The notes under the pieces are model-generated. The model was not told the DNA's origin. It saw only the letters and a program-made list of their open reading frames with translations, and did not search any database. A DNA stretch of 64,000 nucleotides from Anthoceros angustus (lineage: Eukaryota > Plantae > Anthocerotophyta): positions 1 to 64,000 of the forward strand of contig MU008150.1 in assembly GCA_010909165.1 (NCBI GenBank), given 5' to 3'. The translations under genes and the position numbers were made by a program. Positions 9,121 to 61,885 of the stretch are shown in pieces (positions within the stretch are counted from its first letter, which is position 1; the number at the start of each line of letters is the position of its first letter).

Positions 9121-9274
9121 AGTTTGTTTTGTTATGGTGATTCGATTGAATATTTATGATCCTTACATGAAATTTGTAGGCTATCCTCACTTGTTGTAAA
9201 TGATATTACTCAATATAATAAAATATAAAAAACTGATTCTATGTTTTTCCTTTAAGTTTTGGATTTTATGAACT

Positions 9275-17173: not shown

Positions 17174-17182
17174 TTGCCTAGT
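17057..17182 (+). repeat. 63-bp in-frame tandem duplication at the 3' end of PAP copy 2
   Basis: TCTCATGTTAAGACC...GGAGTT(C/T)GATTGCCTAGT starts at 17057 and 17120. CGA in copy 1 is TGA in copy 2. Confidence 0.95.
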
Positions 17183-17449
17183 TCTCCGAGGTCGTAAGAG
17201 AGTAGCAGAAGATCTTGAAAGTAAACAGGCTAAGAAGAATTGTAGTGCCGCGGTGTTCAACACGGATAGCCAGATGGATGTAAATAGCTACATTTATAAA
17301 AGAAGTTTGTTTTATTATGGTGAATATTTATATTCCATACATGACATTTGTAGGCTATTCTCACTTTTTTAAATGATATTATTCAATTAAATTTAATATG
17401 ATATAAGGTATCAAAAATAGTTTTATTTTGTGTTTGTTTTGAATTTTAT

Positions 17450-18042: not shown

Positions 18043-18410
18043 ATGGTAGAAACCGATTGTGCTGCTGCGTGATCCGATTCTTCGGCTTCATTCTCTGCTT
18101 GCTTCGTGCTCGGAATTCGCCTGGTTTGCAGTCAGTATGGAAGTGGCATTCGGAATTGGTGCTGCTGCGGGGGAATTCGTGGCAATTGCTCGTTTGGTGC
18201 TCAATTGTGGTGGCTGTACATGTGCAATGGTAGAAACCGATTGTGCTGCTGCGTGATCCGATTCTTCGGCTTCATTCTCTGCTTGCTTCGTGCTCGGAAT
18301 TCGCCTGGTTTGCAGTCAGTATGGAAGTGGCATTCGGAATTGGTGCTGCTGCGGGGGAATTCGTGGCAATTGCTCGTTTGGTGCTCAATTGTGGTGGCTG
18401 TACATGTGCA
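18043..18410 (+). repeat. Perfect 184-bp tandem duplication covering the PLATZ ATG and intron 1
   Basis: 18043-18226 and 18227-18410 read identical. Confidence 0.95.
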
Positions 18411-38900: not shown

Positions 38901-40259
38901 GTGTCTGAAAGAAGCAATTTGTCGACGTGTTTCCGCAACCTCATGCTCCGACGTTGAGAGCGACCCCCACGATTGGCGCGCGTTGGTGGCTGATCAGGTA
39001 AAATCTTCTCCTCTAGGTACCTGCCTTCAAAAGTGCCAAGAAAAGGATGGTATAATGACTGATGAACGTGTTCATTGAACCTTCCGTTGCTGCTATTTCA
39101 GAGCCTTTTTAACGTAACTTGCAGGTGTTCAGGCTTTATCGTAATCCCGTTGATGCAGTTCAAATGCTCATATTTGATTTCCGGATCCGCCGAAGCTCGA
39201 TCCTCGCCTTTTTCATCAAGCGTTGAAGGATCTGGATACGCATTATCCTTCTTCCTCACCCCAACTTTCCGCACAGAGGACTTTGAAGATTGCATGATGG
39301 TGATGGCGAGGACGCTAGGGAGCAACAAGCATGCAGAGGACGATCCTCCGGCCGCGTTAGAGGCCCCGAAACGCATCAAGAAGCAGCGGAAAAATGCAGT
39401 TGCGGCTGCAAGAGCAGCAGCAGGACCAGTGTAAGGGTGCGTAGCGGATGAGGGGATGCAGAACCCCGCGAATATGGTTACAGTAACCCCACCCGCGATC
39501 ATGCAAATGAGGGAATCCTCTCATGGTAGTGTCCGGGCGTCCACCTCAAAGGGTAGTCAACGGAAAGTATATGAAGACATGGAAGGCCAACGAGGGAGTA
39601 CCAACCTCAGTGGAAATGCAGGAATTGCGATTCCTTATGCTTTTAACTTTGTGGAGCAGCTGAAGGTGAAAAAGCTCCAAGATTCTCTTCCGAAGCGGTA
39701 CAACACCGACAAGGAGTGAAGCGTTATTGCAGAAGAAGAACCGGATGATCCAGGTCTGCCTTGGATTCTACTACTGGCCTTATGGATTAACGGTTATAAT
39801 GGTATTGAGGGGGATTCCCAGGCAAGAGCTGGCTGGATTCTTTGTGCAACAGTTGACAGGATGGGCGAAGATATGCACATACAGTTTCTAGTCCCCAAGA
39901 AACCTCATTTGCACATAAACGATGACATCAACACACATCTCCTCTTGATAATGGATGCTGCCAAGATAATGCCTCGGCATTGTGAGCCATCCAGTTAAAA
40001 TCTGCCTTGCGCGAGTCCAAAAGTGTTCAAGACGTAAGTAAGTTGTATTTCAGTTCTGTATCACTTCCCAAATTCAGTTAGGGTTTCGCCTCATGCTGGT
40101 CTACTAAACTTATTCTGTATATAATGAGCAGGGGGGAGAACAATTTTGCCCTCGCTACGCCAAGGTGTCAAGAACAGTAGAGACGCTACCGGAGATCGGG
40201 CCGAGAGGCGGCGTGTGCAGCTGTCGGAGGCGGTGGGCGGTGTTGAGACTGAACTGATG

Positions 40260-41653
40260 CCTAGGACCATGCAACCAGAGATGGAGGAGGACGAGGTCCC
40301 CGCAGGCCAGGCAGAGCCGAGCTCTCCGGAAGAGGAGGAGCATTCTCCAGCATCAGGGTCGGATGCGGAGGCGAGCCTGGACGAGGCTGTCCAGGGCTCA
40401 AACATGTCCAAATTTTGGGCTCTTCGGACTCTGAGGAGTTTGAGGAAGAGATCACCCCTCCTCCTCTGAAGAGGACCCGCAAGCGCGCACGACAAGGGAA
40501 GAAGAAGAAGGAATCCATACCGGATCTCCGTTGGAGACGAGAAGGCGATTGGCTGGTAAGTTTCATACTGAGAATCCATATGCCCCTCAGCAAACTGAAT
40601 GCATGGAGAAGTTGAAGCAACTTGTTATGGACTACCATGCAGAGTGCACACCAATCAAGCGCAAGAGGAAGGCAAGGTCTCAGGCCGATGATGGAGAAGA
40701 AGTAGCAGGAGGCCGGAAAAAATCAAGGAAAGGGAGGAAGCCTGCAGAAGAAGATCACTGATGCTGAAAGACTTGAGCTCCTGTCACAGGAAGATGACTA
40801 TCTGGAGATGGTTCGTACTCGGGCTTATAAGAAGCGGGTTCAAACCATCACTTTTGATATTCACATTTCATTTCTACGTCCTTCTTCTTTTCTAACGGCA
40901 GATGCTTAGATAAGGAAGGTGGATGAGGCATGGATGAAGTGCCTAGTTAGGCAGATGCAAACAGGTCCTGTGAAGGAAGGAACGCTCCCGCTTTTGTGCA
41001 TGATTGATCCAGCACAGTGCTTAAAGAAGGAAGATGCAGACCCGGAAGAGATAAGAGCCTAACATTATACACTAAGGGTCCTAGGAGGGAACCATTGCTA
41101 TGCCGCCATGCAGACCCTGTCCGAAATGTATCCGGCGGAAGATAAATTTCAATGGCTCGAGGGCCATGTCTATGCAGGCTTGACAGACGAAGAAATGAGG
41201 GTGCTAGCAGTGGATCATAATGTGTATGCAGACAAGAGGAAGAAGCTGGGTTTTATTGAATAAGCTTGGTATATACACGATGAGCTAGAGATTTGGCACC
41301 GGACACACCCCACTAGAAAACCTCATGTGCATTGGAAGTTCAATGTTTATAAGTTGCTGGGGATGCTAGAGGAGGCTGGAAACTCAAAGGACACCGATTA
41401 TGTCCAGAAGATGGTGGATAGGAAGACTTTACCATTAAGGATTACGAGATGCAAAGGTAAATTATGGGAGAACGTGGACACCATTTTCAGAATGTGGGAG
41501 AAGTGCGAACTCCCAGGCGAGGCGGGGACATCGCTGTCGAGACGGCAGGCGGAACGAAAGCATAAGCCACAAGACCCTCATGAGGCGGTCGATCCACACT
41601 TGATGCCCCCCCTCATCCGGCTCCAATGCTGGGAAGGGCATGGCGAGCATTCC
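40260..41653 (+). pseudogene. 5' part of a decayed gene: acidic/basic low-complexity region, then a ParB/sulfiredoxin-like domain
   Basis: One frame from ~40775 reads IRKVDEAWMKCLVRQM...VLGGNHCYAAMQTL...WLEGHVYAGLTDEEMRVLAVDHN (GGNH at 41084-41095). It has three in-frame stops and is cut by the CACTA terminus. Confidence 0.6.
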
Positions 41654-41667
41654 CACTACTAGGAAAA

Positions 41668-42080
41668 CGGGCCTTTTACTATAGGCTTTTTAGAGCAGAG
41701 ATTCGAGGCTCAAGTCGATTTACAACGGGCTTCATGGTTCATGGATTATTTTCTTGTATAGCCATTCGTGTTACTACAGGGCTCTAGTGTTTTACTACGG
41801 GGTGTATTTAGCCACGCTATTCGATGACGTGGCATAGCAAGCTACTTTACTACGAGGGCTCTTGGTTGCAACACGCATAGATCCGATCAATGACTTTACA
41901 ACAATGAATGTCTTGTTTACGCACGTAGTAAACACCATCAAATGCATTTACAACGATTTTCTTTTACAACGGCCCATGGTCTACTTACAATGGGAAGTGG
42001 TTTACAACGCATTGTCAAGTTTTACAACGGGCTTTTACAGACATACATACCTTACAACAACACGCGGTTTACAATGAGGA
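41668..42080. repeat. CACTA left subterminal repeats
   Basis: Many TTTACAAC(G)/TTACTAC motifs. Confidence 0.85.
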
Positions 42081-44949
42081 TCAAAGGTATGTGAGCATTC
42101 ATGTGCATATGGTATAGGGTTTGAGGAAGGGTTCAGAACTCGAATGAAAAGGTGGCCGCTTTATTGAGGCGTGCTCACCCAAAACTATGGGTCGGTCACC
42201 AAAACAAACACAACATCAACACGAACTTCGCACAAAGCGGGATGGCGACGCATCTCACTCGAGAATCTACCGGATGCGGGCGCGGCAGTCCCGTCTGCGT
42301 GCATCCTCTCCTCACCCACCACACGCTCAATTCCGTGTTCTCAATGCCAACCACCTTCTCCAATTCGGCCACAAGGAGGTGGTAGCCGTGAAAATCCTCG
42401 GGCTTCAGGCACCAGCTTCCATTTTCGGAACATCTGATTGGCAAACCTCTGCACCTCCCGTGCACGCTCTAGCTTGTCAAGCGTGCTTGTGCACGGTCGC
42501 ATCGGGCACGAGATATTGGTGAGAAAGGGGCCGGGCTTGTCGATAAGAGCGAGCTCTTTCGGTGTCCTCAAAATTGCGCTCCCATGACCGGTGTTGAAAG
42601 CCATAGCGCTAGCTTGGGCGCCGTCTTCCACAACCAGGTGCAAGGCAACAAAAACACAGTGGAACCCATCGATCGAAATGAGAATTGAGGCCGCATAAGC
42701 AGCGCTGCACGACGCAAAAGCGAGTTCTCGGCATGCAACTTTCCCCAAAGCGAGATCTATAACACTACCTCTACAACACTACAAATCGGCACAACCTGGA
42801 AAAACTCATGGTCGCGCACCTCAATCGCGGTAGGACCACGATCTCAGGTGTGGTGAATGAACTCGCTGAACAGGTGAAGTGGCTTGAAGGCAATGCACCC
42901 TTTTGTTGCCGACTAGGGCAAATGAGAGGCCGCCAGGTGTCTTGGACCCTCGAGTACATTCAGCGGCATGCCGCAGTACATGGTCTGGAAGCCAAGTTCC
43001 GAAAATGACTAGTCAGAAAAACTCAACATCAACTTTAGTGGTCATGGCCAAGTACCCTGTCAAAGTTTATGACCAAGAGGATATGTATTTGACCGAGATG
43101 ATATGTATTTGGTATACCATGTTCCCAAGACCCAAGGAACCCTAAACCATGGTCCGAAACTAGAGAAAAGCTAACTCATGTCCCGGAACCCAAGGAACCG
43201 TAAACCATGTTCCCAAAACCCAAAGTGTTAACACTAAACCATTTTTCCAAAACCCAAGGACTACTCAAATCATTGGAGTTTAACTGCTACCAAAACCCAA
43301 GGACAATGGGGAAAACCCATTTCCAGCATTTATAACCGATGGTCACGAACCCGAAATGAAATCATGGCCAATATTATAAATCAAACCCCAAAACCCAAGG
43401 ACATGGGGAAAACCCACAAGCATAGCGTTTCAACTTATCCTTGGGTTTGAAACTCTTGCCAGTAACTATGATTAGGTTAAATATTCAAATACCAAGCTCA
43501 ATGTGCGGGCTATAAATGCGTGAATAATGCGGCAGAAATTAACCTCGAAAAATAGCCCGCTCACACGAGACACCGGAGGAGAAGTGTTCTTCTTCGAGAG
43601 AATGCGCGGGAAATACATGTCTTTGCGAAGATGTCGAAAAGCACCAGAAAGGGCCCCGCACGTCATCTCTGTTTTGCCGATTACCGTGACACGAAGAATG
43701 CAAGACATCTATGAACGCGTCCGCACACCGCTCTCTTGTGGTCGAGGATATACCACGTCCATCCCGCAGCTCGAGGAGCGCAAAGCGATTAGAAGAAGAC
43801 ACGCAAGTGTGGTAAAGGCAAGTTTAGGGTCAAGGTATGTCAGCATGAGGGCGTTGTTCTTTCTCTGTGGGCTTTTCATTCATGTGTTTGTGTTGTTGTT
43901 TTCTCGTGCCGTTCGCTACAGAGCTCCTGTTTTTCACAACCAGCAATGGGTGCAGATGCCAAAAGCCAGGAAGATAGAATGTCATGCCGAGGCGGACATC
44001 GAGACAAGGCGATTAAGCGGTGGCTGGCGAGGATGCGCCGTCGAGGCCCCGGAAGGCTATGACGTCGGACCCAGATGGTTGTGAAAAACAAGAACTTGGC
44101 GCATCTTTGCGATCTTAGGGCGCGCCTCAACACCTAAAAGGTAAGTGGAGTGCGGTGAAGAAGTTGAGGACCTTGAGCAGGAAGAAGACGCCAATGGTGA
44201 CGAGGATGAGCGAACATGTACAGTTGGAAGACATCAGCAGGCAAGAGGTAGCAAGGGGGGTGATCGTGGACGAGCTAAGCGCGCACTACACCATAGTAGG
44301 CGATGTTGTAACGCTTTTGTAGTAACGATATTCCCTGTTTTGTAACAATGCTTTGCGTTTGTAACGTTTTTTTCGGCAATAAACCAGGAGCGGGTTTGTG
44401 AGTAGAATGTTACTCCACGCGTTACATTATCTGGCGTTACTGAGCGATTTTGTAACGGATGTAACCTTTGGTTAGAGATTAACTGGCCCCCTTTCCCGTG
44501 AGCTCTGTGGCCGCCACTTGGCTTCCTCTCCTGCCCGAGCCGCCACGTCCCATCACGCCGCATACGCTACCATTTTTTCATCCCCCGTACTCACATGTCC
44601 ATATCTCTCCTTGCACGGGCATATTTCCCTGCGTATGTATGCGCCACGTGGTATCCACCCCGTTTTCCGCCATGGGTTTATATGTTCTGGAAGAGCGCCA
44701 CATGTCGGGGAGGCTCGCTGTGACCGTACATGCCTCCGTGATCCCCGTTTTCACATGCTGCTTGTGGCCGCACAGGCTCCACATGTCGGCATTCCCGTTC
44801 TGACGCGCCGTACTTCATCCATTTGTGCTGGTTGCAATTCTTTGGTATCCGACCACGTGGGCTTCTCTGCCACGATTGGCGAGCCATTAATGATGCTTTC
44901 CTTCATTACTTTCGATCTATATTTAAAACACTTCATTACGCAATAAGGT

Positions 44950-47300
44950 AGTTTTCAATTGTTCGTCATTCTGATTAGTAATATGTTATTACTAGATATA
45001 CCCTTCCATTTCAGGGCCACACATGTTTGGTCCACTGCCACTCTGTCTGCCTGCATATATAATGTAACCGAGGCATTGTGTCGTTCCACGTGCAAGGGCC
45101 CGGCGAGGTGCGCCATGAGGTGTGGCGATGGATGTATGCAGTCTATGCGTCCTGGACCGGGCCTACCTTTCGCCCCCATCTACGCCCCTATTCAAATGTG
45201 TACACTCCATACCCGCTGACATTGAAATCGCAGACCTCAATAATCTCCAGCGAACGGGGTGCAGGCTCTCGGCGTCGTGTGCTTCCCTTTCCCTTTGTTC
45301 TTCGCCGCGTCCTTTCGTGCAGGGCACCGCCTTTTCTCCGGCCCATGGTCCCGGATGCTTCCGCTCCTTCATAGATTCCGAATTGACTTCCAGCGCACCG
45401 GAGACCATTGCTCTTCTTCAGATGATGCAGATGTTTCAAGTCTCCCAATTTCCACACGCAGAATCAATTTCAAAGTCAACATAAAAGCATGTGTTGTAAG
45501 CGGCATATCTGTTATCACACCTCATCCTCTCTGGCTTTTCTTCCCACGTCCGCGATAGTGGCTTTAGCAGACCGACCTCTCCGCACACGTCCATGCCCTA
45601 TGTTTGCCTCCCCGCCATCCTCTACAGTCCGGAGCGCTCCCTCTGGTAGCGATAGCTGGTGGCTAGTCGTAGCCATCTCCATCCTCTCAAGCAAAGACGG
45701 ACTTTCCAGGCCCCCACAGAATCCACTGCTCGGTATTTGGCAGTTGGGGCTTCTGGCCCGTCCTCTCCACCCTCCTCTCCCACTTCCTCCATACCTCCTT
45801 CCTCTCCATTGTGCTCTGTACAACATCATCCTGGTTAGATTCACACATGGCAGGTGCAAAGGCAATTGCAAAGGCAATCTACTATTCTCAATCTATGTGC
45901 AATCCATGTGCACGAGTTTCCGCCCCTCGTTGTCCGTCATTTTTCCACCGCCCAACCACCCCGTCCATATTTCCGCGGGATGCAGAACACGCAAACCACC
46001 TTACCCAATTCCAGAAAAGTACTTGCCCAAAGCTCTGGCATGTTTTCTACTTAGAACCCGGCACTCTTACGCCCATGTTGGATGTCTTCCCAGCACTTCC
46101 GAAACTTGGCACAGTATCCCTCTCGCCCTTGTCTGCCGTATGGGTTGGGTCCGTTGGTTCCCCTTCCGCTCGACAGCGGCAGCTATGGCTTCTTGGCGCG
46201 TTAAGCACCTCGGCTTCCACTTGCGCGTACCTTGCCTCTTCATCTGTCGCACTTCACCATACATCCTTTGCAATGTTGGGAGGCATGCGCGCTTGCTTCT
46301 CTGCCTTCCTCCCGGCTGCCTTTTGTTGATCACAAGTGCTCTTGCCTTCCTACTGCCCGGATCCGAGATCTTTGTGGCCCATTGCTTGTTCACCTCCCAC
46401 TTGATAAGCCGTGCGTTTTTTGTGACTCTTCTTTCTTGTCCTCCACCAGCTCCCTCCGGCCCGATAGTATGTCCGTTTGCACTAGTTGGTGCACCATGTT
46501 CAACACCGCGCCACTCAAAGTGGGTGAGCCCTCCTCGGCGAGCGTCTAACGAACTTCCGCGGAGGTGCGATCCAAGCACCCCACCACAGTGCTTCTTCCG
46601 GAGAACGCTCTCAAGTGGCGAACCCCTCCTTACCCACGGATGTCAAAATTCGGCGGAAATGGGCTCTACCTCTCCTTCTGACAAAGGAGCCCTTCGGCTC
46701 TGCTGGAGGGCTCCAACTGTCGGCCCCTCTCCTTCCTGTTCTTCTTCCCCACCGGCTACCTCCCGCTCCGCCCATGCTTCCTGCCAGTTTGCTAAGATCT
46801 CTGCTCGAGCGAGGGCGACTTCATCGTGACACCCCGGTCTGAGTTGAGACTCGATGACTTCCTCGTCGGTCGCGCTAGGCAAGCCGTCCATATGCCCTTC
46901 TTCGTCTGCAAGCCCGCCATCCGCTACGGGTGATCCTCGCCCGCGCTGCTGATGGTCACCCAGAGTACCGCCTCGCAGCTCCCAACCGGCGCCATTGCCA
47001 TCGTCACAAGCAATTTGCCGGCAATCTGCTGCGCTGTCGTGTGCTCTCGCCGTCGCCGCTTCAGCCCGCGCCGCTCCCTGCCGATGGTGTGTCCGTGTTC
47101 CCCGTCGCCCCTCGTGCATCGCGTCCACTGCCCGCGGACCACCCTGCACCGCAGGTGGTTTCCCCACCTTCGTCCGAGCCATTGCCGCCGCGCTCCACCT
47201 CTTCCAAGCTTGTTGAAATGTGTGATGTTGTCGAGTGCTCGGCTCCGCTTGCATATCCATGTTCACGCTGGTGATCTTTCTACCACACTGCAAGTGTTCA
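44950..47300 (-). pseudogene. Decayed second ORF of the CACTA element (TnpA-like by position)
   Basis: Long frameshifted minus-strand ORFs 46643-47293, 46067-46579 and 45515-45877 lie downstream of the transposase in the same orientation. No diagnostic motif was recognised. Confidence 0.45.
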
Positions 47301-49099
47301 AAATTTGAATGCCATTAAGCATATATCCGTGCCCAAATGTCCCAGACATTGTGCACATTGTACGGTACCATGCACCCTGATCTTCCAATGGCCTCCCCCC
47401 ACGCGATTCACGAGCCAGCTCCGGCTCTTTGATTGATCTTGTCCTTCCACTGTCGCCGCCCTCTTGTACAGGCGTGAGCTCTATTCGATCCAGCGCCCCA
47501 TAGGCAGCAGTGCATGCGCGGCTGTCCTAGGTTCTATCGTGTGACCCTTCAATGTTCTCACCTCACCAGCGGCGTGGGACGTAAGGTCGGTCAAACCAAG
47601 TGAGTTGAATGGTGGCAGAAGGTACATAGTCTTGGACCATCGCAGCCACGGTTCTTTCCGATACCGCTTGTTTCCTGCCGAACATGGACTCGCAGGCCGA
47701 TGTCCCCAGTTTCTCATTGCATTGGAGCACGGCGCTTTCTGGTGACCCACCGCGGATGGCCAACCCCCGGTGTGGCGTGCGGTGGATGCATCGAGTCTTT
47801 CACACGGCCTGGTGTCGAACGCCTCCACCCGAAGGAGCGTCGCCCGTGTTCACGGTGGGAAATATGACCCTTGACAGGGCCGAGGCCGATGGGGATGGCC
47901 TTCTAAGCCGAACATGGAGAACTCGGTGAGCTTATGGCCGTCGATTGAAGTGCATCATTGTGTCTTTGTCTCCGCCGTGGGATCCGTCATTCCTCACCCG
48001 TTGCTCCCGACATGTTGGGGATGCATTCGAGTGGGACGACATTTGCTAGAAAGGTCCCTGAACATTGCAGTTCTGCTTCTTTCACCACCTCGAGGGAGGT
48101 GCCTTCGCTGGCTTCTCATGTAAATGTCGCGGCAAGTGAACCGCATCATTCGAACCAGGGAAACTTGGTGAATGCTTTTGTGTCTACACGCTGGCAAGAA
48201 CGGGCGGCGCTCGCCCTTTTATTCTGTTTTCCTCTATATGCCCGCAAGGGAGTTGAACAATGCCCAAATCGCAAATCAAACATTGCAGTTGTACCGATCG
48301 GTTGCCGCACGGTGTCCAGACGCTCTTGGGAAGTTTCTAAAGGCAAGTGTCACTCACCACGCGCGTGTACTTCACCATCTCAACTTGCGGAGCCTCGGCA
48401 AGGAGGCAGCGCGATTCCATTCCATGGACCAAGATGGTTATTAGTGACTCACAGGGTGACTATCCGTGCATTTAAGGCCTTTGTCTTCCTTGAGTATCGG
48501 TAATAATATGAGGTCCCCGTACGTTAATCCACCTCACATCGGCATATTCCCTTGATTCCGTAGGGTACTTCACCAAAAATTTTAGGGTTAAGTGATCCTT
48601 GACGGTGCAAAGGGTGGGCACACAACACCTCACATATTTTGAAGGACAAACCTAATTCAATTCCAAAGCAAATATAAATAGGGTAATTGTTGTCTACCAA
48701 AGTCCGAGCGAACATGGGGTAGGGTTAAGAGTCCGGTTTAGGATTTAACCTGAGTTTGTGGTTTGACTGCGCGAATCTTCTTGACCACTCAAGTTCGCGC
48801 ACCATATGTCTGTCGAGACCTTATTGTGCATGTCCTTATAAGGCCGCGGGTTTACATCTACATGTGAGTGCGAGCTCGCCCAGTGCTCCGGCCGCGTGCC
48901 AGACACTCGTTCATGCCAGTTGGGCATATAAGGAGGCATCGCATTCCTAGCTTACCAGGCCCAGTTCGCTTCCTCGGCTGCGGAAATTTCTATTCCGCCC
49001 GGCAGCGATCTTAGCTTGCGGCCTCTTCCTATTCCGATTGCCCTGGCAAGCATCGGCCGTCCTCAAGGAGCTTCAATCTCTGGGCCTTCCCTTCCACGA

Positions 49100-52000
49100 A
49101 GGGTTGCTCCTACGGGTCCGGGCTCAATCGCTGCAAATGTCTGGAGGAAATGGGCCGAGCACCCGGGATGGCTGGGCGGCAGAGTGCCTAGAACTCTACC
49201 GGCAAACCTGGGAGCAGGCTTGGGCAGTTCGGAGGCTTCCAGAGCGCGATCCACACACGTCGAGCGGGCCGGACCGGCTATGGCGCAATCCCTCGGGCGT
49301 TGGATTTCAAGCGTCGGATCATGGAGATGGGGCGGTGCATACTGGAGATTATTGCCCTCTCCGAGGCTCAGGTCAGGCCCGGATCAGGATGTGTCTTCCT
49401 TGGTGGATTGCATCTCGCCACGTCTTAGAGATCTTTTATAGAGCTGCAGCGTTGTGGCAATCCATAGAGGCCCTTTCAACCCGTCTCTTCCTTGAGCTCG
49501 GAAGCGGCTTTGTTCATGTGCTAGCGGATGCCCATTAGAAAGCTTGCGGTAGGCCCTAAATTCGTGCCTTTCAGCGGTTTAGTAAAATAAACCACCGTGG
49601 CTTAGCGCTCTCGTTGTCGTTCTTTGGTAGTATAGGTGCGTTTATCCTATGGTGAAAGGAAGCTGTTCGGCACTCGAAGGTGTCGCGATGGGGCGGACAC
49701 GTTGTCTCGATTCCGCTCATCGCCGTCGTGAGGAACTCCCATTCGCCATTGTGTGAAATGAGGCACAAAGGCCGTTGGCTCGTCTGCTTCCTCCTCCCGT
49801 CTAATCCATGTGCCTTCTCTTATGGATGGCGGCGATGGGGCGCTGGAATGCTTGGGGTCAACCCGCCCATGCCTCCAGTCAAAAAACCCTCCCGTGACCG
49901 GCCGGAAAGCGTGAGTAGGTGCGCCCTGCCCAGGCGCACGGATGGCATGCACTACGGTACATGCAGAATGAATGGTCCTTGTGCATGGGCGGGACGATTT
50001 GATTTCCGTATGCACGCGTGGCAGGTACTATGGGTCAAAAAAACGTCATGTCCCTATGCATCTGAATCTGGATAGTGTTTGGACTGGTAGGGCACTCACA
50101 GACCTCCCATCCACGTTGTGAAGGGAGGTGCGAGGATGAAACAATGCTTGTGTGACTGGCCGGAATGTATGCGGACCGCTTCATCGTCTCCATCCGTGTA
50201 CTCATATTCTTTTACGGTGTCCACCAAGAGGAACCATCATCTCGCATGGACACATTCTCCTCGCATTGGTACCACTTCACCTTGAACACAAATGGCGTAT
50301 ATGCCGCCTGGAGTTGCGGTATTTGTTGAATTCTCCACAGAATATGCTCCGCCGCTTTGTTCCAACCTTCCACATTGAATGACCCCTTGTCACAGGTTGC
50401 CTTCATGTGTTTATCTCCTTTTGATGCGTAATGGTATCCGTAGGCACGTAGTGCGATAGCTCTTGATGCTCGGGCCCCGAATGAGGTCCTCAATTTACGG
50501 TGTGAGGACAAGCCCCTCGTCCCCGGCCAGCGTTTTGTTCATCTCCGCCGGGCCCATGAGCCTCGCCGACACACTTCAGCCAATCGCGATGTGAGGCGGG
50601 CTTCCACCCCGTCTGTACTCCTCAAGGAATAGGCGGAGGGCGTTCTTAAAATATCGAGTGCACCTCGAAGTGGGCCTCTGCGGTCATCTCCTTGTCCTCC
50701 GGTTTCCGATTCCCATATCCTCCTCCGACCAAATTAGGCTCCGTCGTTGGCGCCGATGTCCCGCCATCGTGTATTTCCACCAAATATTATACGCAATAAA
50801 ACATGGCCTCTCTCATGCAATAACCCTCGACCATGCATGCCTGGATGAGCCATGTTTACACCATATCTTTTAAAACTTTCATATACCGTTCTATGAAATA
50901 CATCCAGCAGACGGGGATGCCCCATGTACTTCACGACAGTGCACCACCATGTACTTGGATGTCAAAGAACTTGGGCGGCATAACTCTCTCCAATTGTGCC
51001 ATCGTTTCATGAGCCAGCAACCGCATTGCCTCGATTTCTCGTCTTTCAATCTCCCGCCTCCCCAGCCAGCGGAACAACCTCGCAAGCCCTGCGATGGGGT
51101 CATAGACTTCTCTTGGCAATGCACCGCGCAACACTATTGGCAGGTAGTACTCTAACACCTTCTTCCAGTCATGTGTTTTCAAGCCAGATAATTTGCCTTG
51201 TGTTAACTTCCGCCCTATGTGAGTTGAGAACCACAGCATGGCGGATCTTCATAGCTGGTCATGGACTATGGCATGGCCAAAGCGGGATGACATATTTGAC
51301 TTCAAATGTGGCATCCACGTTTCATCCGGACCACAAATGGGCTTTGGTGCACACCTGGATCCGCCATGTCCCTCCTGCCAAGTCATCCTTTGGCCCGTCA
51401 AGAAGCCATATAATGAGACAACCACGTTTTTGAGGTGTGCATACCATCCTTTAGGTCAGGGAGCAAATTACATGGACGCATCTCCATGCGGAGTAAATTT
51501 CATCATTGCAAGCGATGAAATACAAAAGCGAGAAATCACACATTTTGTTTATGCGAAATCGCCATCCACTTCTTTGTCACGTTCCACGGCTGCGCTCGCT
51601 CCGTTCATCGGTGGCCTCTCCATCTCGGAGGCGAACCAGCGGGCAGGCGGTGGCGGTTTCAATGGCACCATTGAAAAGATGTACGTCGCTCCTCAATGGA
51701 TGGTCCTCTGGTAGAAACTTCGCTCATAGTACACCACCTTGTTCGGATGTGGGAGTACCTTGCATCCAAGTGCTTCCAACACATATGGCATGCCATGTAC
51801 CACGATGTTTGAAGCCCACAAGCACCCCATGCCGGTAATCGGTGGTGTTCCGGACTCGAGCTTAAATGCTCTCATTGGATGCCCAATTGGGTATGATGCG
51901 TCGATGGCATCCACTCCGATCCAAAGCCGCGAAGGTCCTCGTACAATGGCTGTAAAAAGACATCAAGGTTTTCAGCCTTATGTGGGCCGGGTATGATAAC

Positions 52001-53300
52001 GCATGTGATAATGTAATCCTTGCGGATGGTCTTCCACGGAGGAACATTATAGTTCACGAGCAGTACCGGCCACACGCTGTAAGTGGAATGTTTTTGCCCA
52101 AATGGGTTGACCCCATCAGTGGAGAGCCCAAATCGAAGGTTCCGGTCTTCAGCCCCAAAGCCGTCAATCGCATCAAGAGCGGCCCAAGCGGGCGTGTCTG
52201 CCATTATGCTCATTTTGCCTTCATTACTCCACGAGCGGTGAGCCACACAATCACGGGAGGCGAAGGCACCATATACATCCGGCAGCGCTTCTGTGATAAA
52301 TACCACATCACTTTTTCCGCCCATTTTTCTTCATGGTGCCCTTCTTGAATCTTTTCAACCCACATTTCCAACACTTTTATCATTTCATGCTGGCCCCTAT
52401 AGCATACTTGGGGCACGTCGATCTTGTTGGGAACCTAGGCTTAGAGAAGCCATGATCGTGGAAGCTTGATCCTTCCCCGGGCATGGTATTTCCATCCGGC
52501 AATATAGATTGATGCGGCTTGTGATAAGCGTTCATGCCGCATGCGATCACCGTACTGGATGTCAAGCGGTAGCATGGTGGCGGACGGGATCACGAGTTTG
52601 CCCAAGAAACAATGGCGTTTCTACGAACAATCTTCTCCATGGACCGGGCTTATCACCTTCCGCCAAAGGACTCTTCCCCCACGGCGAGGCAGTCATCATT
52701 GTCACGATCGGCATCGAGAAATCCTCGTCGTGCGGCGATTCGGACGCATCCGCATGTTCTTGTTCGGTCGTCGCCGTCCACATCGTCATGCGCATTCGAC
52801 ATGCACATCCGATCAAGGTCGAGTCGTCATGGTCCGCATGGATATGGGAGGGATGGGGTGCCCTCTCGACTTGCATCGACACCCTCACCCGGGTTAGCGT
52901 GCCAGCCGGTGGTCGCGGGGCGATGGTCTAATCCAACATCCGCGGGACACGTTTCCGTTTCTTACAAAATCGGCAAGGGCACCATATGACATGCCCTCTA
53001 TGCATTCCTCCATGCCTGCGGACACACGTGCCAAAGTGGCGTGATAGAGCCCACACAAATGATGACTCGCGGGGCGCGCCTTGTCGATGGTATTGGAAGG
53101 AGACGAGTTCGAGCATCTGGGCGGAGTTGCGTCGATCGAGTTTGGTGGAAGCACAGTGCGGCCGGCCAGTGTTCAAATCCTCGGCGGTGTCGGATAAGCT
53201 CCTTGACACGCAGCGCCAGAACGCCGGGCGAAGTGGTGTTGTTGTAGTCGACGGCCCGCCATCGCGGCAGAGTTCTTCACGAAGACATGGCCACGCCACC
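49100..53300 (-). pseudogene. CACTA transposase (transposase-associated domain, Transposase_21/Tnp2, DUF4218, DUF4216), frameshifted
   Basis: IWCPCRFC...GWHANPGE; RNLRFGLSTDGVNPFG...VWPVLLVNYNVPPW...IIPGP...LDVFLQPLYEDL; GLKTHDWKKVLEYYLP...MPPKFFDIQVH; FKVKWY. The 3' limit is approximate. Confidence 0.9.
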
Positions 53301-56300
53301 GCCTACACCTCTCAGCATGAAAACTTTGGTTCCACGCTAGCCTTGACAGCGGCGTGGCGTGTCCACTCGGAAAATCACGAAGTATCTCTCATTCAGTGTT
53401 GTCGTGCATTGCAATGCGGGAATCTTGAGCGATGGGCGGCATTCACGGTGGCGGCGAGAGGGCAGCCTCGGCTCCGGCATGCAACACAAGGCGCGGCGCA
53501 TGGGAGAGGGCAGGGACAGGCGCAACCCGAAGAGGAGCACAGGAGGGACCGCAGCGGTCCCAGCGTGGTCACCGACGCCGGGGAGCCGATGTTCACGGAG
53601 GACTTCGTCACTGCGGGAGTTCGAAGGTGGGCGCCCGCGTCGGCCGGGCCGGTGGTAAGCACCGCCGGTAGAACTCCTATCCTGTCGGGTTCGGTGAAGT
53701 TAAGCGGCGGGAAGATGGTCTAAGACAAGTTGTTTGTGCCGGTGGTGGTCCTTGATGCGGTTGGAATGCTTAGAAGTGACAACGTGCTCGTCGAGAGGCC
53801 TTCGCCGATCGATTGAGCCATTCTCGCTAGAGAGGCGATCCGTGCAGTGAAGAGGCCAAGCGTCTGCGACTCATGGCGATCATCCGGGACCTTCGTGATT
53901 GTTGATGGCGGTGAGTGGGCGAAGTCTGCGGTTGGACATTTATGTAGCGACTCCTATGCTGAAATTGTGTGTCATTAGGGGTCGAGAGGTGCACGATTGG
54001 CGCACAAATTTATCACGTCCCTTGTTTGCCGAGGCAAAGTATGAAATGGCAACACGCCTTTTCTTTGTGCATTCTTATCGTTTGTGTTCCACGCCCGCCG
54101 GTCCCAATGGCCCGTTCAACCACTTGCACACGGCGAGCCTTTCGTGAAGCACTCATCTTGCGGTCGGTGGCTCATGGAGATCGGCAAAGTGAGGACCGAG
54201 TTGTGAAACATCGAGGGCAGGGGATGGAAAAAAGCCTTACAGCTGGCGATGGATGTCATCCTCCGATCATTGGTATGCACAAAACACATGAAGGCGAAGC
54301 CCGACAACAGGCGTGTCACGCCCCGCCTATCATATATCACGCCGTCGAGGCGGGCCAATGTACGTTTTATGACGGCGCTCGGTGGGTCGTCGCGTGAAAT
54401 GCGATGGAAAATTTCCCGCCCGATTACGCATGTAACATAGGGCGAGGAACGCGGATGTGGTTCACAGCCGGCGACAAAGTATCTTCCAGCATCTTCGTGA
54501 GCTGCTTTCCTCTTCTGAGATTGCCGCGTCCGATGGCGTCTAGCAGCAGCGCTCCCAAAGTTCAGGAGGCGGAAGCCCATTCCACTCCCCTGCCTCCTCC
54601 TCATGTTCAACTGTCGCCACGCATCGCAGCCATCTTCAAGCGAGAGCAGGCGGAAGTGGCCATGTCGGGCACGGTCACCACTGTCCGCATCCCTCTTGGA
54701 GGGGGGAAGTGGACGGAAATCCGGTTCCTCTGAAACCCGTTTCACAACACGCTGTTGGGCCCCATCCCTGAAACAGAGAAAAGGAGGACACCCGCCTTTG
54801 AGCGACCGTTTCACAGGAGAAGAATGAGGCCCGACTCAGAACTTGGTGCCGATGTCACGAACATCAGCCACAGCGATATGGCGGGAGCATCATATCTGGA
54901 CATGATCAAAGCGGGTCAATTCAAGCGATTACGCAGCGAAATTATCCGGCGGCTCAAAGCGGACTCTATTCCAAATGGACATGAAGGTTGAGGTGGACGG
55001 CGCTGAAGGAGCTCCGCCCGGTGTGTGTGGACAAGATCACGATGACGTGCGGTGGGCATGGCGAAGAAGAGAACCCGGGTTGGATAAAATGGAAAGGCTG
55101 CGGTAGCGGGTTCTTCTTCATGCGCTTCTTGCGCAAGGCCTTGCGGTGGATCGGGAGTGGCTTGTGGCGTGCTTGGAAATGTGGACAACAACTCCCATGC
55201 GCTGCGGCATCGGAGCTTGATTTTGCGGGGAGGCGCCAAACAACATCGATGTCAATCTTCGTGGCCTGTTCCATTCAAACTTTGCTACTGTCTAATTTGC
55301 TTCCATTGCAAATTAAGTCCCAACGATGCGTTTATGCATGTTAGTTGCATGGTAGAGCAAAAGGAAATCATTTGCAAAACAACGCAAATCGCACTCACGG
55401 CTTGAGAGGCCAAGGTTCAATGGCACTCGGTCTGAGGCAAACCTCAATTGCAAAACAACGTGCCTTCTCTTATTCTCGAAATGACCAATTGTCACCTTAT
55501 CGAGGACACGCTAAAGCCGAGTGCGCAAGCATAAGAAACCACTAAATTGCTTTCTGTTTTCGCAATACCCTGCATTGTGCCTCGCAGCGCCCAGCTTGGC
55601 ACAACACGAGCTAATTTTGGAAGGTCCGGGCGTGGGCGGAGGGCGTTTGTAACGAGGCCATTAGGCTTGTTCCGGTGTAAAAGTGTATGTGCGGTGTCGG
55701 ACAAGCCATCGGTGTGGTTACGCCATGGGCGAGATGACCGAATGTGGCAGCGCATCACGGTGAAACCAAACCTCGCATGGCGCCCCTCCCGATCGGACGC
55801 CCCGTTTTGTATGCCATGGAGCCGTGCAATGGGATTACCGATCGGACGCTGTGATGGATATCCCCGCGATCCGGACAGAGAGGTCAAGTGTTCGGAGCCG
55901 CCAAAGCTCATAAGTTGTTTCTTAAAGCAAAGTGGGTTCACTTGCACTGCCTTGTAGCGAAACGAAACTACTTTATGGGGTGATGGGTGGTTCACCGCTA
56001 GGCGTTGTGGGGAGGTTGCGAGTTCGAGCAACTGCGGCGCATACGCATCTCTGCGCACAACACATGACATATCGCCCGTCTGACGTGGCTTAAGGGCACA
56101 TAGGGAGCAGCGGGCTAAGGCGAAGTGCACGGGGGAGCGAGGAGATGAGAAGGCAGGCGTGCGAGCCGGAGTTAAGGCACCATAGACCACCCTTGCCCAC
56201 ACACGGTGAGCGAAGCGTGGGATTTTGTAACGCCTTTCAGCCGTGAGCAGGAATGTTACTCCGACCGTTACTAGACCCCCTATCCGATTTGTAGTGGCGG

Positions 56301-58599
56301 TGGCGAGTTAAGGTGACAAATGGCAAGGCAAGCGGCTACCAAGTTCGGTCTTTGGCCTTGAGATGGCAGGGAGCCAATAGGTCGAGTAGGAAAAGCACGA
56401 TGGAGGGAGTTTAACCAAGAGTCTCAAGGGCTGTAACGGATCGGTAAATGCCGGCTGAGGCATTGGGGTTTGAGGTTTTGGCTTCATGTTCGAGAGTCGA
56501 GGTCCAAGAGGCGGCGAAGATGAGGAGGACAAGTTCCACAAGGTCCGGTCGCGCCTTACCTCGATGAAGATGTCCTTCCAACACAAAACTGGGCCTCACC
56601 TATGGGAAATGTGCCACAACGGGGTTTGCACGGTGAAGTTTGCAATGGTGACCTCGGACATCCGCTTGGATTGTCCAAGAGTGGGAAGGCCCACATGCCG
56701 ACATGGGTGTATGCCATGCGAGCTGCCGGAATCCCCGCAAGTCTTGCCGACCTCGAGGCAAGGGCGAAGGAGGCGACCTTAACCAAGGATGCCGTTGAGG
56801 AGGCCGTTGAGAAGGCGGCGAAGAGGAGGTTGGCGGAGTTCATCGGCCGGGTAGGGTGTGATTCGAGGACACCATTGCCCGAAAAGGGACCAGCAACTAG
56901 CCTGCGATCGAAGGTGCCTTCAAGCCGAATACACGGCCAATTCTAGCAGGCCGAATTCGAAGGTGAGCCAAGATGAAGGAGTGGCACGATTAACGTGGTG
57001 GTTTGTGATAGCCTCCGGGATCGTGAGATAGGCGATATTTTGGAAGATGCGCGAGGCGGGAAATGGGAAGGCCTGATGAAGTGGATTCATTTGCTTCTAG
57101 GACACCCTTGCCGCGATTTATCACGGATGATCACGAACAATACAATCACAACCTGGGGTCAACCCCATCATGAGCATCATTGGGGATGCTCATCTTTGGG
57201 GTACATGGCGAAATCCCTATGACATGTATGGACGTTGACTTGAGGGCAACAAGCGGCGTGCACCAAAAGCGGAAGAGGAATTTCGACATCCAGGAGGTTC
57301 TTGTCTCATATGCATGAAAGCGGTAAGTATTCTCTGTGAGGAAAATGGGCGTAGGGGAGCATGGTTGCTTTGCGGTGAGGATCCATGCATGGTTGCTTTG
57401 AGCTGATTCGAGGCGATTACAGTTGGGTTTACAGCTGATTACAGGCCGGGCTTATCGAACTGTAACCCGGGCTGGTGCTCGGGCACGAAGTTCGGGCACG
57501 ATACTTGAGCGATAATTGAGGCTGAAGTTCGAATTTTCGATGCCCTGAGTTACTCACGCAAAAGTAGGCTTGTAACTCCATGGTCATTTAATTTTGGGTT
57601 GAGGCGGATTTCGATCATGAGGTTATGTTGCATGAATGTTCTAAATCACAATTGTCTATGTGTTTTGAATGTGCAGTTACATACTCGTGACTTAGCCGTG
57701 GTTTCACGAAGGATAGGGTGCACTACACAATCCGGCATGTGCAACCACTCGATTTTTGGGCACACTACGATCTTGAAGTGCTTCTTATTGAAAGCACCTT
57801 CGTCAAACAATTTCGGGCCCATGGAGCTTTCATTGTATTGTAGCTCGATTAGTGGCACCCGACGAGGCATTGGAAGAATAACTTGAGAAAGGAGGCTAGG
57901 CACTTCTTACATGGGAAGAAAGGGTCGATAAGTATGTGCCCAAGAGCTTGAAGAAGGAGCATTGGGATGTTCTCTTGAAAGCAGAGAAAGATAAAATTTG
58001 GATGGTGTTGTTGCACCCAACAAAAGATTGCTGCTGAGAGGGAAAAACGTCATTTGGTAAGCCATATTCTTGCTTTGGGTTTGGAGGTCAAAAGCAATTC
58101 ATGGACAGTTCGAGCCAAGTTTGATAGGCAAGCAACTTTGGAGATCAAGGTGTGGGATCTAGGCATGGAAATTGGTTGAACAAGGCGAGGCGCATTGGAA
58201 GGAGACTAAAACCACAATTCCATCCTTGGGTCCTCAAGTGGATTACGAAGGGAAAGTCGATAAGGTGAATGTGGAATCTATTGCATGCAGGATATGAGAG
58301 TGCAGTGTGATGAGCAGTGTGGAGGCAATTAGAAGAGGGTCCGGGATGAAGGTTTCATGGTGGAACATCTTCTTCCCGACGATTGAAAAAGGCTAAGAAA
58401 GCCTCACCATAGTTGGTCGGACAATAGAGCTTGCACTTCCACTTTTGTAATCTTCAACCGTAATTGTTGAAGTTCATCTCGTTATGTGGGCTTTGTTCAT
58501 GCGGTTGTATGTTTGTGAAAGAGGGTTGGCGTTCTTTGTCAAATGGAGGCCTTGTGACAAACTAATCTACTACCGATTGTAGGATGCATGCATGTGTAG

Positions 58600-59231
58600 G
58601 CTTTGCCAATATAGCGGTAGTGGAGTTTTTTTGAGACCTCTGTAGATTTTACAACAAACTTGCTTCATTGCAACGCATTCGATTACAACGGACCCCTATC
58701 TCTACTCCGAAACTTTAGCGAGAGCCTTTTACAACGGGTTTGTAAAATGAAAAGCTACTTTTAAACGAACCACATGCGGTCCATTTACAACAAGGTCCGT
58801 TGTAAAGGTACATACTTATTACAGGCTCGTCAGAAAGTTACGCCGATTACAACCATTCGATTAGGTTAATCATGGTTAACTAACGCCAACTAGTTTGTGG
58901 TAATCGAATCCGATTACTTAACCCCGATTAATAAAGTCATGATACTTAGTATATTAACCATGGTTATTGAAGTTGTAAAATGCGTTGTAAGTGTACCGTA
59001 GTAATGTCCGTAAAGGGGTTCCGTTGTAAAAGTTTAACGATTGTACGGACCACCGGTCAAGCCATACAAGTATGGGTTGGACAATACCGTATTCAATACA
59101 TAATATAGCCCTCGTATGCGTATATACTTTTACTATGGATATTACTAAGGTGTGTTTACTACGGGGGTTTTTACTACAGACTTAGTAAAGGCGTTGTAAT
59201 GCCCGTTGTAATTTCCGTTGTAAAAGTATCC
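58600..59231. repeat. CACTA right subterminal repeats
   Basis: Dense TTTACAACG / CGTTGTAA / TTACTAC motifs in both orientations. Confidence 0.85.
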
Positions 59232-59248
59232 TTTTCCTAGTAGTGTCC

Positions 59249-60950
59249 AAGGAGTCCCAAAGGACGAGAAGGGTGAGGAGATGTTGATAGTAGTGACCCA
59301 AAAGTTCATCCAAAAGGCTATTTGAAAGATATAAGGACATTGATGTTAGCAGCAGGAAGAAGATTAACCTTATCGAGCATGCTTTTAGAAAGGCTATGAA
59401 GTGTGCCCACCCTTTGAAGTCACCAAAGCTTTCCCAAACATACCAAAGCCAAGGCTGGCGAAATTTCAAAGCGACATTCGCGACAATGGTAAGTGAATAT
59501 TCAACTCTATATTGTCGGGTCGGTACGCACTCTGTCTGCCGGTCGGCGGTTACCGAACTGGCTTTGGACCTCTCTTGTTTTATTCCCGATGCTTCTTGGT
59601 CGCGCCATGGCGCCTCCACGTTCAAGTAGGTCTCTGACCACCGTGTGTTCCCAAAACCATTTCAGGATTTTGTATATAGCGCGCGTAATTGGAAATGCAT
59701 GGAAGAAGAGCGCAAACGAATGGCGACAAGGACATGGATGCAGTGGCAGTTCGAGTTAGGGTCTTAGCAAAGTTACATACCAGGTAGTGCATCGCGATAT
59801 TTTGGACATGAAAGGATTCTTGCCACCGAGGAGGTATACTCTTCTATGCGACCTCCCTCGGGTTCTGATGACATGAGAATGACAAGTCGTTCGTTGAAGA
59901 AGAATTGAAAGAGCTCATCAGCTCTTTCAACGAGAAGACCACTAGCAATGTGTTCCGTATAGTTCTGATGCATGGAGTGGAGGGGGTGATTCAAGCTAGG
60001 GAGGCTTTGAGGTCGTGGTGTAGGAAAGGAGTCATACAAACCACGGTATGGGAGAAAACTAACATCCCACCTAACGTTGGTCTTTGTGAAGCAGGGGAAT
60101 ATATGATGGGAGCCTTGGTGAAGATAGAGTCCAATGTTGGGGCTCCTCTTTTGAGGAAAGACAACAAGCAGTGCTCCCAAGAGTTATCCGGCATGGGCTG
60201 TGGTGAAGAAGCTCATTTACCACCGGTTATAAGATGGTCGTATCTCCATATCGAAACCTTTGGGCTTATTGGGCATGTTGGTGAACATGTTCTCCAACAA
60301 AAATGGATTATTGGCCTTTGTCAGGATCGGGGTCATTTTGGTGGCAAATTGATTCAAAGGAGCGTTGTGGCCATTGACAAAAGGCGCATGATGCTCAATG
60401 TATATGTTGCAAAGTCAGCAGGTTGGGCCTGCGGATGAGTTCGAAGAAACAACGGAGATAAGTTTTCGTGGGGCCACAGAAAGTTTGGGCAAAGAAGATC
60501 ATGCGAGCGGTGGCATTGATAGGAAAATGCAAGTGTATAGCTTGCTTGGAAGAAGGAGGTCGAGAATGAAGGACTCCACGGACCTCGGGACGGCGGTTGA
60601 AGATTAGCATTGGCGATATGGGATGAAAAGCGGCACACTACCACCTGAGACAGGCTCCAGCGTTTACATTTTGCGGGTTGAAGGTGATGACTTTGGTGAC
60701 ACGGAAAGGACTTTGGAAAATGTAGAAGCGGTGCAGTTCAAAGGTTAATTTGGTTGAAGTAGATGATCCTTTGGGCGGTCGGGACTTGTAGATAGTTGGG
60801 GCTCTGTCAGGTTAACGGTTCAATTCCGTTTTGACTCTTTGGAAAAGCCACAATTTGATTTGAATGTATCTTGCCTTTTGGATCCATAATCTTTGGCACT
60901 ATGCCCTTTCCACCGGATATACGGCAGAATGCGGACGTGTATCTTGAAAC
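59249..60950 (+). pseudogene. 3' part of the same decayed gene: beta-class N4/N6 DNA methyltransferase-like domain
   Basis: Across frameshifts: VVHRDILDMKGFLPPRRYTLLCDLP (59784-59858), VWEKTN (~60046), KPLGLLGMLVNMFSNK (60254-60301), WIIGLC/GSGSF (60304-60338), RSVVAIDK (60358-60381). Confidence 0.6.
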
Positions 60951-61380
60951 AAAAGTGTGCATAAATTGAAAAGAAACCCTATTTTACTTACATTGTTCTT
61001 AGTAGAACCTACCTTAAAGCACATCTATTTTAAAAACACTTGTTTTGGTTGATATGAGATAGGGGTGGCAACCTTCTCTCAAAGCGCAAAAGGGGCTTTT
61101 AAGAATCGGCCGTTATTGAGAAGACACTGTTCAACGTGCTTGAAGTTCTATTTTAAGGTCTTTTATTCAATTGAGGATTCATGCAAGGCGCTCTTTTCAT
61201 CAATCTCCTATGACTCTAAGAAATTTCTATCTAATAGATCCAAAAGATCTTGATCTAGACCAACACGCTAGTTGTACATATGTCCACTTTAAATACTCCT
61301 CCCATTATGTGTTTTCTTAGTGGCCTCTTCCATGGACCCTTCTTGGGTCACTCTCCAAGGACTCTAAGTTTGTGTGTTTA

Positions 61381-61432
<52 letters not shown>

Positions 61433-61885
61433 TGTGTGAGTGTGTGAGTGTGTGAGGTGTGAGTGTGTGAGTGTGTGAGTGTGAGTGTGTGAGTGTGTGA
61501 GTGTGAGTGTGAGTGTGTGAGTGTGAGTGTGTAGAGTGTGGTGTGTGAGTGTGTGAGTGTGTGTGTGAGTGTGTGAGTGTGAGTGTGTGAGGTGTGTGAG
61601 TGTGAGTGTGGTGTGTGAGTGTGTGAGGTGTGAGTGTGTGTGAGTGTGTGAGTGTGAGTGTGTGAGTGTGTGAGTGTGTGAGTGTGTGAGTGTGAGGTGT
61701 GTGAGTGTGTGAGTGTGTGAGTGTGTGTGTGAGTGTGTGAGTGTGAGGTGTGTGAGTGTGAGTGTGAGTGTGTGAGTGTGAGTGTGTGAGGTGTGTGAGT
61801 GTGTGAGTGTGTGAGTGTGAGTGTGAGTGTGTGAGTGTGTGAGTGTGAGTGTGTGAGTGTGTGAGTGTGAGTGTGTGAGTGTGGA
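61381..61885. repeat. Compound microsatellite: pure (TG)n grading into TG/TGAG mosaic
   Basis: Directly visible. The His/Thr-rich ORFs at 61317-62149 are artefacts of it. Confidence 0.97.

Follow-up and report, generated by a model that had tools for sequence, protein, structure and literature searches.

The question raised by this locus is how a gene that couples a ParB-like domain to a DNA amino-methyltransferase came to lie in the nuclear genome of a plant, and what became of it there. The gene relic stands on the forward strand of a 64,000-nucleotide stretch of Anthoceros angustus (Anthocerotophyta; assembly GCA_010909165.1, contig MU008150.1, positions 1 to 64,000), the whole of which is called the window in the following, and it is interrupted by an inserted element of the CACTA type. 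A sequence-only reading of the window had described it as a dead ParB-methyltransferase gene, possibly borne by a transposon. We regard it as very probable that a cut-and-paste DNA transposon of two genes, one for a DUF7869 (Sola1-type) transposase and the other the ParB-like/methyltransferase gene as passenger, has left a copy here that is dead, internally deleted and later split by the CACTA element. In particular, the product of the passenger gene would have begun with an acidic N-terminus, followed by a ParB/sulfiredoxin-like domain, by a helical linker and lastly by a DNA amino-methyltransferase domain of the beta class, and the linker would be the part that the 17.6-kb CACTA element entered at a later time, thereby splitting the gene.

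The two domains of the passenger gene and their relatives

Relatives with open reading frames (ORFs) come from one public sequencing run and one metagenome. A phmmer search of 1.8 billion representative proteins with the 188-residue piece encoded at 59872-60435 retrieved a 288-residue protein, P0002, with an E value of 6e-4; the top match of the same search, P0001, is a repetitive PKD-domain protein that was taken as spurious and dropped. Word-index searches added P0003, P0004, P0005 and P0006, and these five relatives, the only ones obtained in this way, are all found on contigs of run SRR33208241 (loci L001-L004). Seven more distant loci, L005-L011, were added by a metagenome scan with the methyltransferase alignment. 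As to the window itself, Pfam gave no match for ten stop-free pieces, N6_N4_Mtase and ParB_N included, and a feature search of the ESM Atlas with the 188-residue piece gave no usable match.

Judged by sequence comparison, the 3′ half assigns the gene to a family with members that score above the gathering cut-off (26.7 bits) of the N6_N4_Mtase profile (PF01555). Specifically, P0004 scores 50.1 bits, P0002 47.3, P0005 39.7 and P0003 30.0, and the metagenome loci L005, L006 and L008 reach 31-37. A profile of the family methyltransferase alignment in which two window pieces are included (A8) matches the solved structures of CcrM (5e-7), M.RsrI (7e-6), DpnA (6e-5), a DNA cytosine-N4 methyltransferase (4e-4) and MboIIA (2e-3), and the nearest annotated sequences are phage methyltransferases, at 29% identity. 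The window is linked to this family by tblastn (E 8e-11), as well as by an alignment of its right half with residues 22-326 of P0003, 37% identical over 270 residues, which scores 260 against 48 ± 7.5 for shuffled queries; the motif IV stretch alone scores 104 against 29 after shuffling, and the motif I stretch alone 114 against 38. The position of motif IV (59847-59864) precedes that of motif I (60304-60335), as it does in the beta class, and the relatives are alike in this respect. The amino-methyltransferase that had been read from the letters of the 3′ half is thus supported by profile, as its relatives pass PF01555 and the family profile reaches CcrM.

The catalytic residues are a different matter, in that the tetrapeptide (D/S)PP(Y/F) is found neither in the window, which reads DLPR(V), nor in P0002, P0003, P0004 and L004, which read DLPRG. 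The metagenome relatives L005-L009 have D(V/I)PYG(F), with the aromatic residue kept. In alignment A8, motif IV divides the family into two clades, DLPR on the SRR33208241 contigs and in the window (rows P0002-P0004, L004:5635-5895 and window 59847-59864) versus D(V/I)PYGF on the metagenome contigs (rows L005-L009). Loss of the aromatic residue is common to at least five diverged copies, three of which (P0002-P0004) have an intact S-adenosylmethionine (AdoMet) loop, which in the relatives reads D(G/M)C(S/A)GSG(S/T). The loop of the window copy is not intact and is readable only across two frameshifts, with WIIGLC in one frame and SGSGS in another. The chemistry of the DLPR copies, that is of the window, P0002-P0004 and L004, may be altered or lost, and since they carry DLPR and not DPPY, the prospect of an active system writing N4-methylcytosine (4mC) or N6-methyladenine (6mA) is weakened. 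It is conceivable, if somewhat unlikely, that the DLPR copies represent a conserved non-canonical variant acting differently from a classical 6mA/4mC writer, for example as AdoMet-dependent DNA binders or readers that would shield the transposon, or as enzymes with a new target. The basis of such a variant may be seen in the open copies, where the aromatic residue of motif IV is lost while the AdoMet loop and the ParB-like domain are intact. If true, it would amount to a transposon-encoded epigenetic device in land plants, of which our literature search found no description.

With moderate confidence, the 5′ domain is ParB/sulfiredoxin (Srx)-like at the level of fold and lies outside the ParB_N sequence family. 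The structural comparisons made use of a model of the homologous L004 domain, predicted from a ten-row alignment with a mean predicted local distance difference test score (pLDDT) of only 51 (core 55-73); a single-sequence prediction was unusable (pLDDT 38). With this low-confidence model, a Foldseek search of 350,000 chains has only ParB-family and sulfiredoxin proteins in its top nine (ParB, Noc, PadC, sulfiredoxin and KorB folds), the top 12 of a VIA structure search belong almost all to the ParB/Srx superfamily, and a comparison of shapes with the ESM Atlas brings up DndB, ParB_N and ParB_N + N6_N4_Mtase clusters, most of the named rows being ParB/Srx. In addition, judged by language-model features (0.96, 187 of 256 features) the domain falls among DUF3723 clusters, for one of which the representative has ParB_N proteins as its structural neighbours.

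A domain unrelated to ParB, namely another alpha/beta domain whose VLGGNH and DHN likeness would be convergent, is unlikely, even if it would sit well with the low confidence of the model and with the fact that no sequence method yields a ParB profile match. ParB_N (PF02195) is matched by Pfam neither in the window pieces nor in the ORFs of L004, L006 and L008; an hmmsearch of PDB sequences with profile A7 found no ParB, hhalign against P1 ParB found nothing, tblastn of the ParB-like ORF against phages gave no match, and the metagenome scan with the ParB-like alignment A5 gave zero relatives. Furthermore, the arginine-rich cytidine triphosphate (CTP)-binding box of partition ParB, GERRxRA, is absent, and V(L/V)GGNHxxxA stands at that position of the alignment; the GGNH-type motif is presumably closer to the GCHR/DGHHR variants of Srx and of ParB-like nucleases. 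What speaks against an unrelated domain is that three independent structure searches place almost solely the ParB/Srx superfamily on top, together with the DUF3723 link to neighbours of ParB_N proteins and a sub-threshold Pfam match of L006 to HTH_ParB (8.6e-4). The ParB-like signature first proposed for the 5′ half thus finds fold-level matches of a model of low confidence on its side, and a ParB sequence-profile match has not been obtained.

The transposase and the host element

The transposon reading draws on the gene that accompanies the passenger. On the opposite strand, 1.2 kb upstream of the ATG of the gene relic, lies the C-terminal tail of a DUF7869 (Sola1-type) transposase (Table 1), which is the divergent layout of L004, where a 619-residue DUF7869 protein (1.7e-49) is encoded divergently to the gene; likewise, the methyltransferase of L005 and of L010 is adjoined by a DUF7869 protein. 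With the tail upstream in the window and the same transposase beside the methyltransferase gene in three relatives, what had been put forward as possibly transposon-borne finds its support. DUF7869 clusters of the Atlas are 85-100% eukaryotic and have ISAzo13 and DDE_3 transposases among their structural neighbours. As compared by eye, the DUF7869 proteins of the relatives have the core motifs VDNTxAxNKN and MVGHTHxQIDQxFS in common with the transposase of Sola1-1_Ec32 (PMC12477816 supplement), an element of the brown alga Ectocarpus that is considered below.

The catalytic core of the transposase, expected from 39031 to about 40250, gave no tblastn match in the window, though it is much better conserved than the tail. 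In the window the tail stands about 1.5 kb closer to the ParB-like domain than in L004 and, since no trace of the core is left, it is likely that an internal deletion removed it.

A number of observations weigh against a Sola1-type transposon copy. The transposase is represented in the window only by a 29%-identical tail, and its assignment to Sola1 rests on motifs compared by eye, with no computed alignment. For the host element neither terminal inverted repeats (TIRs) nor a target duplication or borders were found, the best inverted match of the flanks scoring 28 against a shuffle maximum of 31. No palindrome or k-mer array was found when the window copy was searched for one, the close relatives are all drawn from a single sequencing run, SRR33208241, and the ParB profiles give no match, as described above. 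The absence of the transposase core and of recognisable termini would suit a former host gene as well, one that was stranded or domesticated from the transposon, kept for a time, deprived of its function and then hit by the CACTA element. This course of events is very unlikely, as the tail relic has exactly the upstream, opposite-strand position that the transposase has in L004, and the heavy decay shows no sign of past host selection. A decayed copy of the transposon remains our preferred explanation.

A separate DUF7869 (Sola1-type) transposase fragment is present elsewhere in the window, at 3900-5440 on the forward strand. It is 57% identical to L004 over the catalytic core and carries stops, and it has neither DNA similarity to the copy at 38.6-60.5 kb nor an adjoining methyltransferase relic.

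The CACTA insertion and the continuity of the gene

The insertion at 41654-59245 bears the signature of a CACTA (EnSpm/CMC) element, as the sequence-only reading had stated. It is 17,592 bp long, ends in perfect 14-bp TIRs that open with CACTA (CACTACTAGGAAAA and TTTTCCTAGTAGTG), is flanked on either side by a TCC target-site duplication (TSD; 41651-41653 and 59246-59248) and has subterminal repeats of the TTACAACGG type at both ends. Pfam was run on nine of its longest ORFs and found no family, an EnSpm-type transposase included, and because its long ORFs are without a Pfam family the element is probably non-autonomous. It sits in the linker part of the gene, at the conserved W-R-x-F-Q-G motif and, following excision of the insertion and of one TCC, a single frame continues over the junction (RAWRAF/QGVPK), again as first read.

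On comparison with the relatives, the two halves are one gene, because the relatives cover the two in collinear order and continue through the junction. In particular, 40736-41290 of the window and L004:3867-4421 are 35% identical over 185 residues in a translated comparison, with ordered matches running on through the linker into the methyltransferase part, and the junction peptide RAWRAFQGVPK corresponds to RVWRSFQGIEK in L004 and RVWRGFQGIEQ in L002. The open 488-residue ORF of L004 aligns, allowing for frameshifts, with 40757-59262 of the window, through the junction (34% identity over 298 residues); the homology to L004 starts at 40757. A further translated match joins 59339-59404 to positions 595-660 of L002, and a single locus of a relative corresponds in order to both halves. 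The distant loci L006, L008 and L009 have the same domain order and keep a W-R-A-L-Q-G motif, and in L006 the reading frame passes from the ParB-like ORF into the methyltransferase ORF by way of a canonical GT-AG intron (2971-3455, CAG/GTAAGA ... CTGCAG/TTC).

Gene callers give the two domains as separate ORFs in the relatives, as they would if two unrelated relics, one ParB-like and one methyltransferase, merely appeared continuous once the CACTA element is removed. Such a coincidence is extremely unlikely: order and spacing are alike in L002, L004, L006, L008 and L009, the conserved W-R-x-F-Q-G peptide straddles the excision junction, the intron of L006 between the domains is canonical and in frame, and the published Ectocarpus protein is a single fusion (PMC12477816). 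Separate genes had been foreseen from the outset as the case that would undo the first description of the locus, and the collinearity, the junction peptide and the L006 intron all speak for one gene.

That the gene is a bacterial or phage contaminant, or a prokaryotic ParB-methyltransferase acquired very recently by horizontal transfer, has next to no probability even though phages and plasmids typically carry this pair of domains, given the CACTA-type interruption with its CACTA ends and 3-bp TSD, the donor-like intron site, the lysine-rich stretch resembling a nuclear localisation signal, neighbouring long ORFs that look like plant genes by eye, relatives with spliceosomal-type introns and a DUF7869 transposase of largely or wholly eukaryotic clusters, and an identity to phage enzymes of only 29%, near-identical prokaryotic sequences not having been found.

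The gene was called dead when first described, and stops and frameshifts are indeed found throughout the copy, about five and eight, respectively. With these, the 17.6-kb insertion and the loss of the transposase core, the window copy is dead and cannot act today. The peptides quoted in the first description were all located at matching coordinates and are collected, with the parts of the relic, in Table 1. An intron is putatively placed from the GTAAGT donor-like site to about 59640.

Table 1. Parts of the passenger gene relic, the inserted element and the transposase tail, with positions in the window
Feature	Position	Strand	State and evidence
C-terminal tail relic of DUF7869 (Sola1-type) transposase, ending at its stop codon	38642-39031	-	tblastn against L004 transposase residues 426-536, 29% identity, E 2.5e-5; also L010 residues 614-662
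ATG and acidic, lysine-rich low-complexity N-terminal region	40257-40909	+	Decayed, with frame changes; three-frame reading; composition like the N-terminus of the L004 488-residue ORF
ParB/sulfiredoxin-like N-terminal domain relic, RKVD...VLGGNHCYAA...AGLTDEEMRVLAVDHN	40910-41260	+	In-frame stops at 40907, 41060 and 41261; L004 similarity
Helical linker up to the conserved W-R-x-F-Q-G junction motif	41264-41653	+	One frameshift near 41588; collinear with L004 and L002
Inserted CACTA-type element, 17,592 bp	41654-59245		TIR, TCC TSD, subterminal repeats
Linker exon resumed after the insertion	59249-59489	+	Ends at a GTAAGT donor-like site seen by eye; junction peptide QGVPK, QGIEK in L004
Beta-class amino-methyltransferase domain relic	59639-60475	+	About 7 frameshifts and 2 stops; frameshift-aware alignments, shuffle controls, family profile
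Peptide IRKVDEAWMK	40910	+	Left half
Peptide VLGGNHCYAA	41078	+	Left half
Peptide AGLTDEEMRVLAVDHN	41174	+	Left half
Peptide RAWRAF	41635-41652	+	Left half
Peptide VVHRDILD...CDLPRV	59784-59864	+	Right half; CDLPRV at 59847-59864
Peptide VWEKTNI	60046-60066	+	Right half
Peptide VVSPY/KP	60237-60259	+	Right half
Peptide KPLGLL	60254	+	Right half
Peptide WIIGLC / SGSGS	60304-60335	+	Right half; two frames
Peptide RSVVAID	60358-60378	+	Right half

Candidate binding arrays and known systems

The gene type is not new, as it was published for Ectocarpus in 2025 (PMC12477816) and related passengers have been published for red algae. The giant Sola1 transposon Sola1-1_Ec32 of Ectocarpus encodes, opposite its Sola1 transposase, a protein of 1104 residues with ParB-like and N4C/N6A methyltransferase domains (PMC12477816, 2025). 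According to the published proposal, repeats within the element are bound by its ParB-like domain, through which the DNA-modifying domain is brought to the DNA of that element (PMC12477816; 10.1101/2025.02.11.637652). Extended from these proposals and from the repeats of L006, the mechanism in intact elements would be one in which repeated palindromic motifs of the element's non-coding DNA serve as binding sites for the ParB-like domain, and the methyltransferase domain, brought there by this binding, would mark that same DNA with 6mA or 4mC.

The repeats in question lie at L006:79-4859, on metagenome contig Ga0066793_10009811, where CGATGTTTGGATCG occurs 20 times with at most one mismatch, against 0.01 expected. 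All 20 copies are non-coding, being distributed upstream of the gene, within its intron and downstream, and they are partly perfect 22-bp palindromes, GACCCGATGTTTGGATCGGGTC. By its sequence this array is a candidate for binding by the ParB-like domain, in line with the published proposal. A different palindrome, GGAGCGAGACCCGTCTCGCTCC, is found in L008 at the position that matches the L006 array.

Sola1-1_Ec32 shares with L004 the pairing within the passenger and the opposite-strand layout, and the transposase motifs are alike by eye. In contrast to it, the window copy lies in a plant nuclear genome, is dead, lacks the transposase core, probably by deletion, is split by a CACTA element and has DLPR at motif IV; the AACCG/CGGTT termini, 282-bp TIR and 4-bp TSD of the Ectocarpus element were not found for the window element, and the proteins were compared by eye only. 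The red algal passengers are the Plavaka accessory genes PAG2 and PAG3 of Bostrychia (10.1101/2025.02.11.637652), in which a ParB-like passenger stands beside inverted-repeat arrays, similar to that of L006, and is proposed to bind and modify its own element. They differ in that the ParB-like domain is fused to a 2-oxoglutarate oxygenase, the methylase is found together with a SET domain in a separate protein, and the elements belong to another transposon superfamily.

Outside transposons, fusions of ParB_N and N6_N4_Mtase (PF02195 + PF01555) in phages and plasmids agree with the gene described here in the order of the domains and in the methyltransferase family. They keep DPPY, whereas the present family is eukaryotic, intron-bearing and transposon-borne, and its 5′ domain is without a ParB_N profile match. 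The beta-class N6-adenine enzymes CcrM and M.RsrI share with the A8 family the motifs W-x-K-x-N and (H/N)P(T/Y)QKP and the D-x-x-x-G-x-G AdoMet loop, but the matches are confined to the second half of the domain, and the present family has a different catalytic tetrapeptide. Among eukaryotes, MpDN4MT1a/b of Marchantia, which write 4mC in sperm (10.1101/2021.02.12.428880), and N4CMT of bdelloid rotifers are prokaryote-type amino-methyltransferases in nuclei, likened here by description only; the DN4MT1 preprint (10.1101/2021.02.12.428880) mentions neither a ParB domain nor a linkage to transposons. A survey of eukaryotic adenine methyltransferases describes a different fusion, of ParB-HTH and Dam type, in chlorophytes, and reports that the chlorophyte Ime4-like/MT-A70 and chlorophyte-type Dam methyltransferases are not conserved in land plants (PMC4738411). 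A description of a ParB-like/methyltransferase passenger with a Sola1-type transposase in land plants was not found in our literature search.

Read as a decayed transposon copy, the locus would be a fossil record indicating that Sola1-type transposons with a ParB-like/methyltransferase passenger, published for algae, have also colonised a plant genome, and the copies found here show an altered catalytic motif. If open copies exist in this genome, it would be of interest to ask whether, in a land plant, a transposon can bind and chemically mark its own DNA, and whether such elements are the source of some of the 6mA or 4mC reported for plants.

Other repeats were observed in the window. Just downstream of the gene relic, an impure GT / GAGTGT microsatellite of about 500 bp occupies 61370-61885 and, just left of the GC-richer transposon relic, a 41-nucleotide unit within an AT-rich stretch is present in three tandem copies at 37873-37995. 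A block of about 1.6 kb is duplicated at 7536-9140 and 15674-17323, the two copies being 89-94% identical and about 8.14 kb apart (repeat families D6-D8, D10 and D11), and a perfect tandem duplication of 184 bp is found at 18043-18410.

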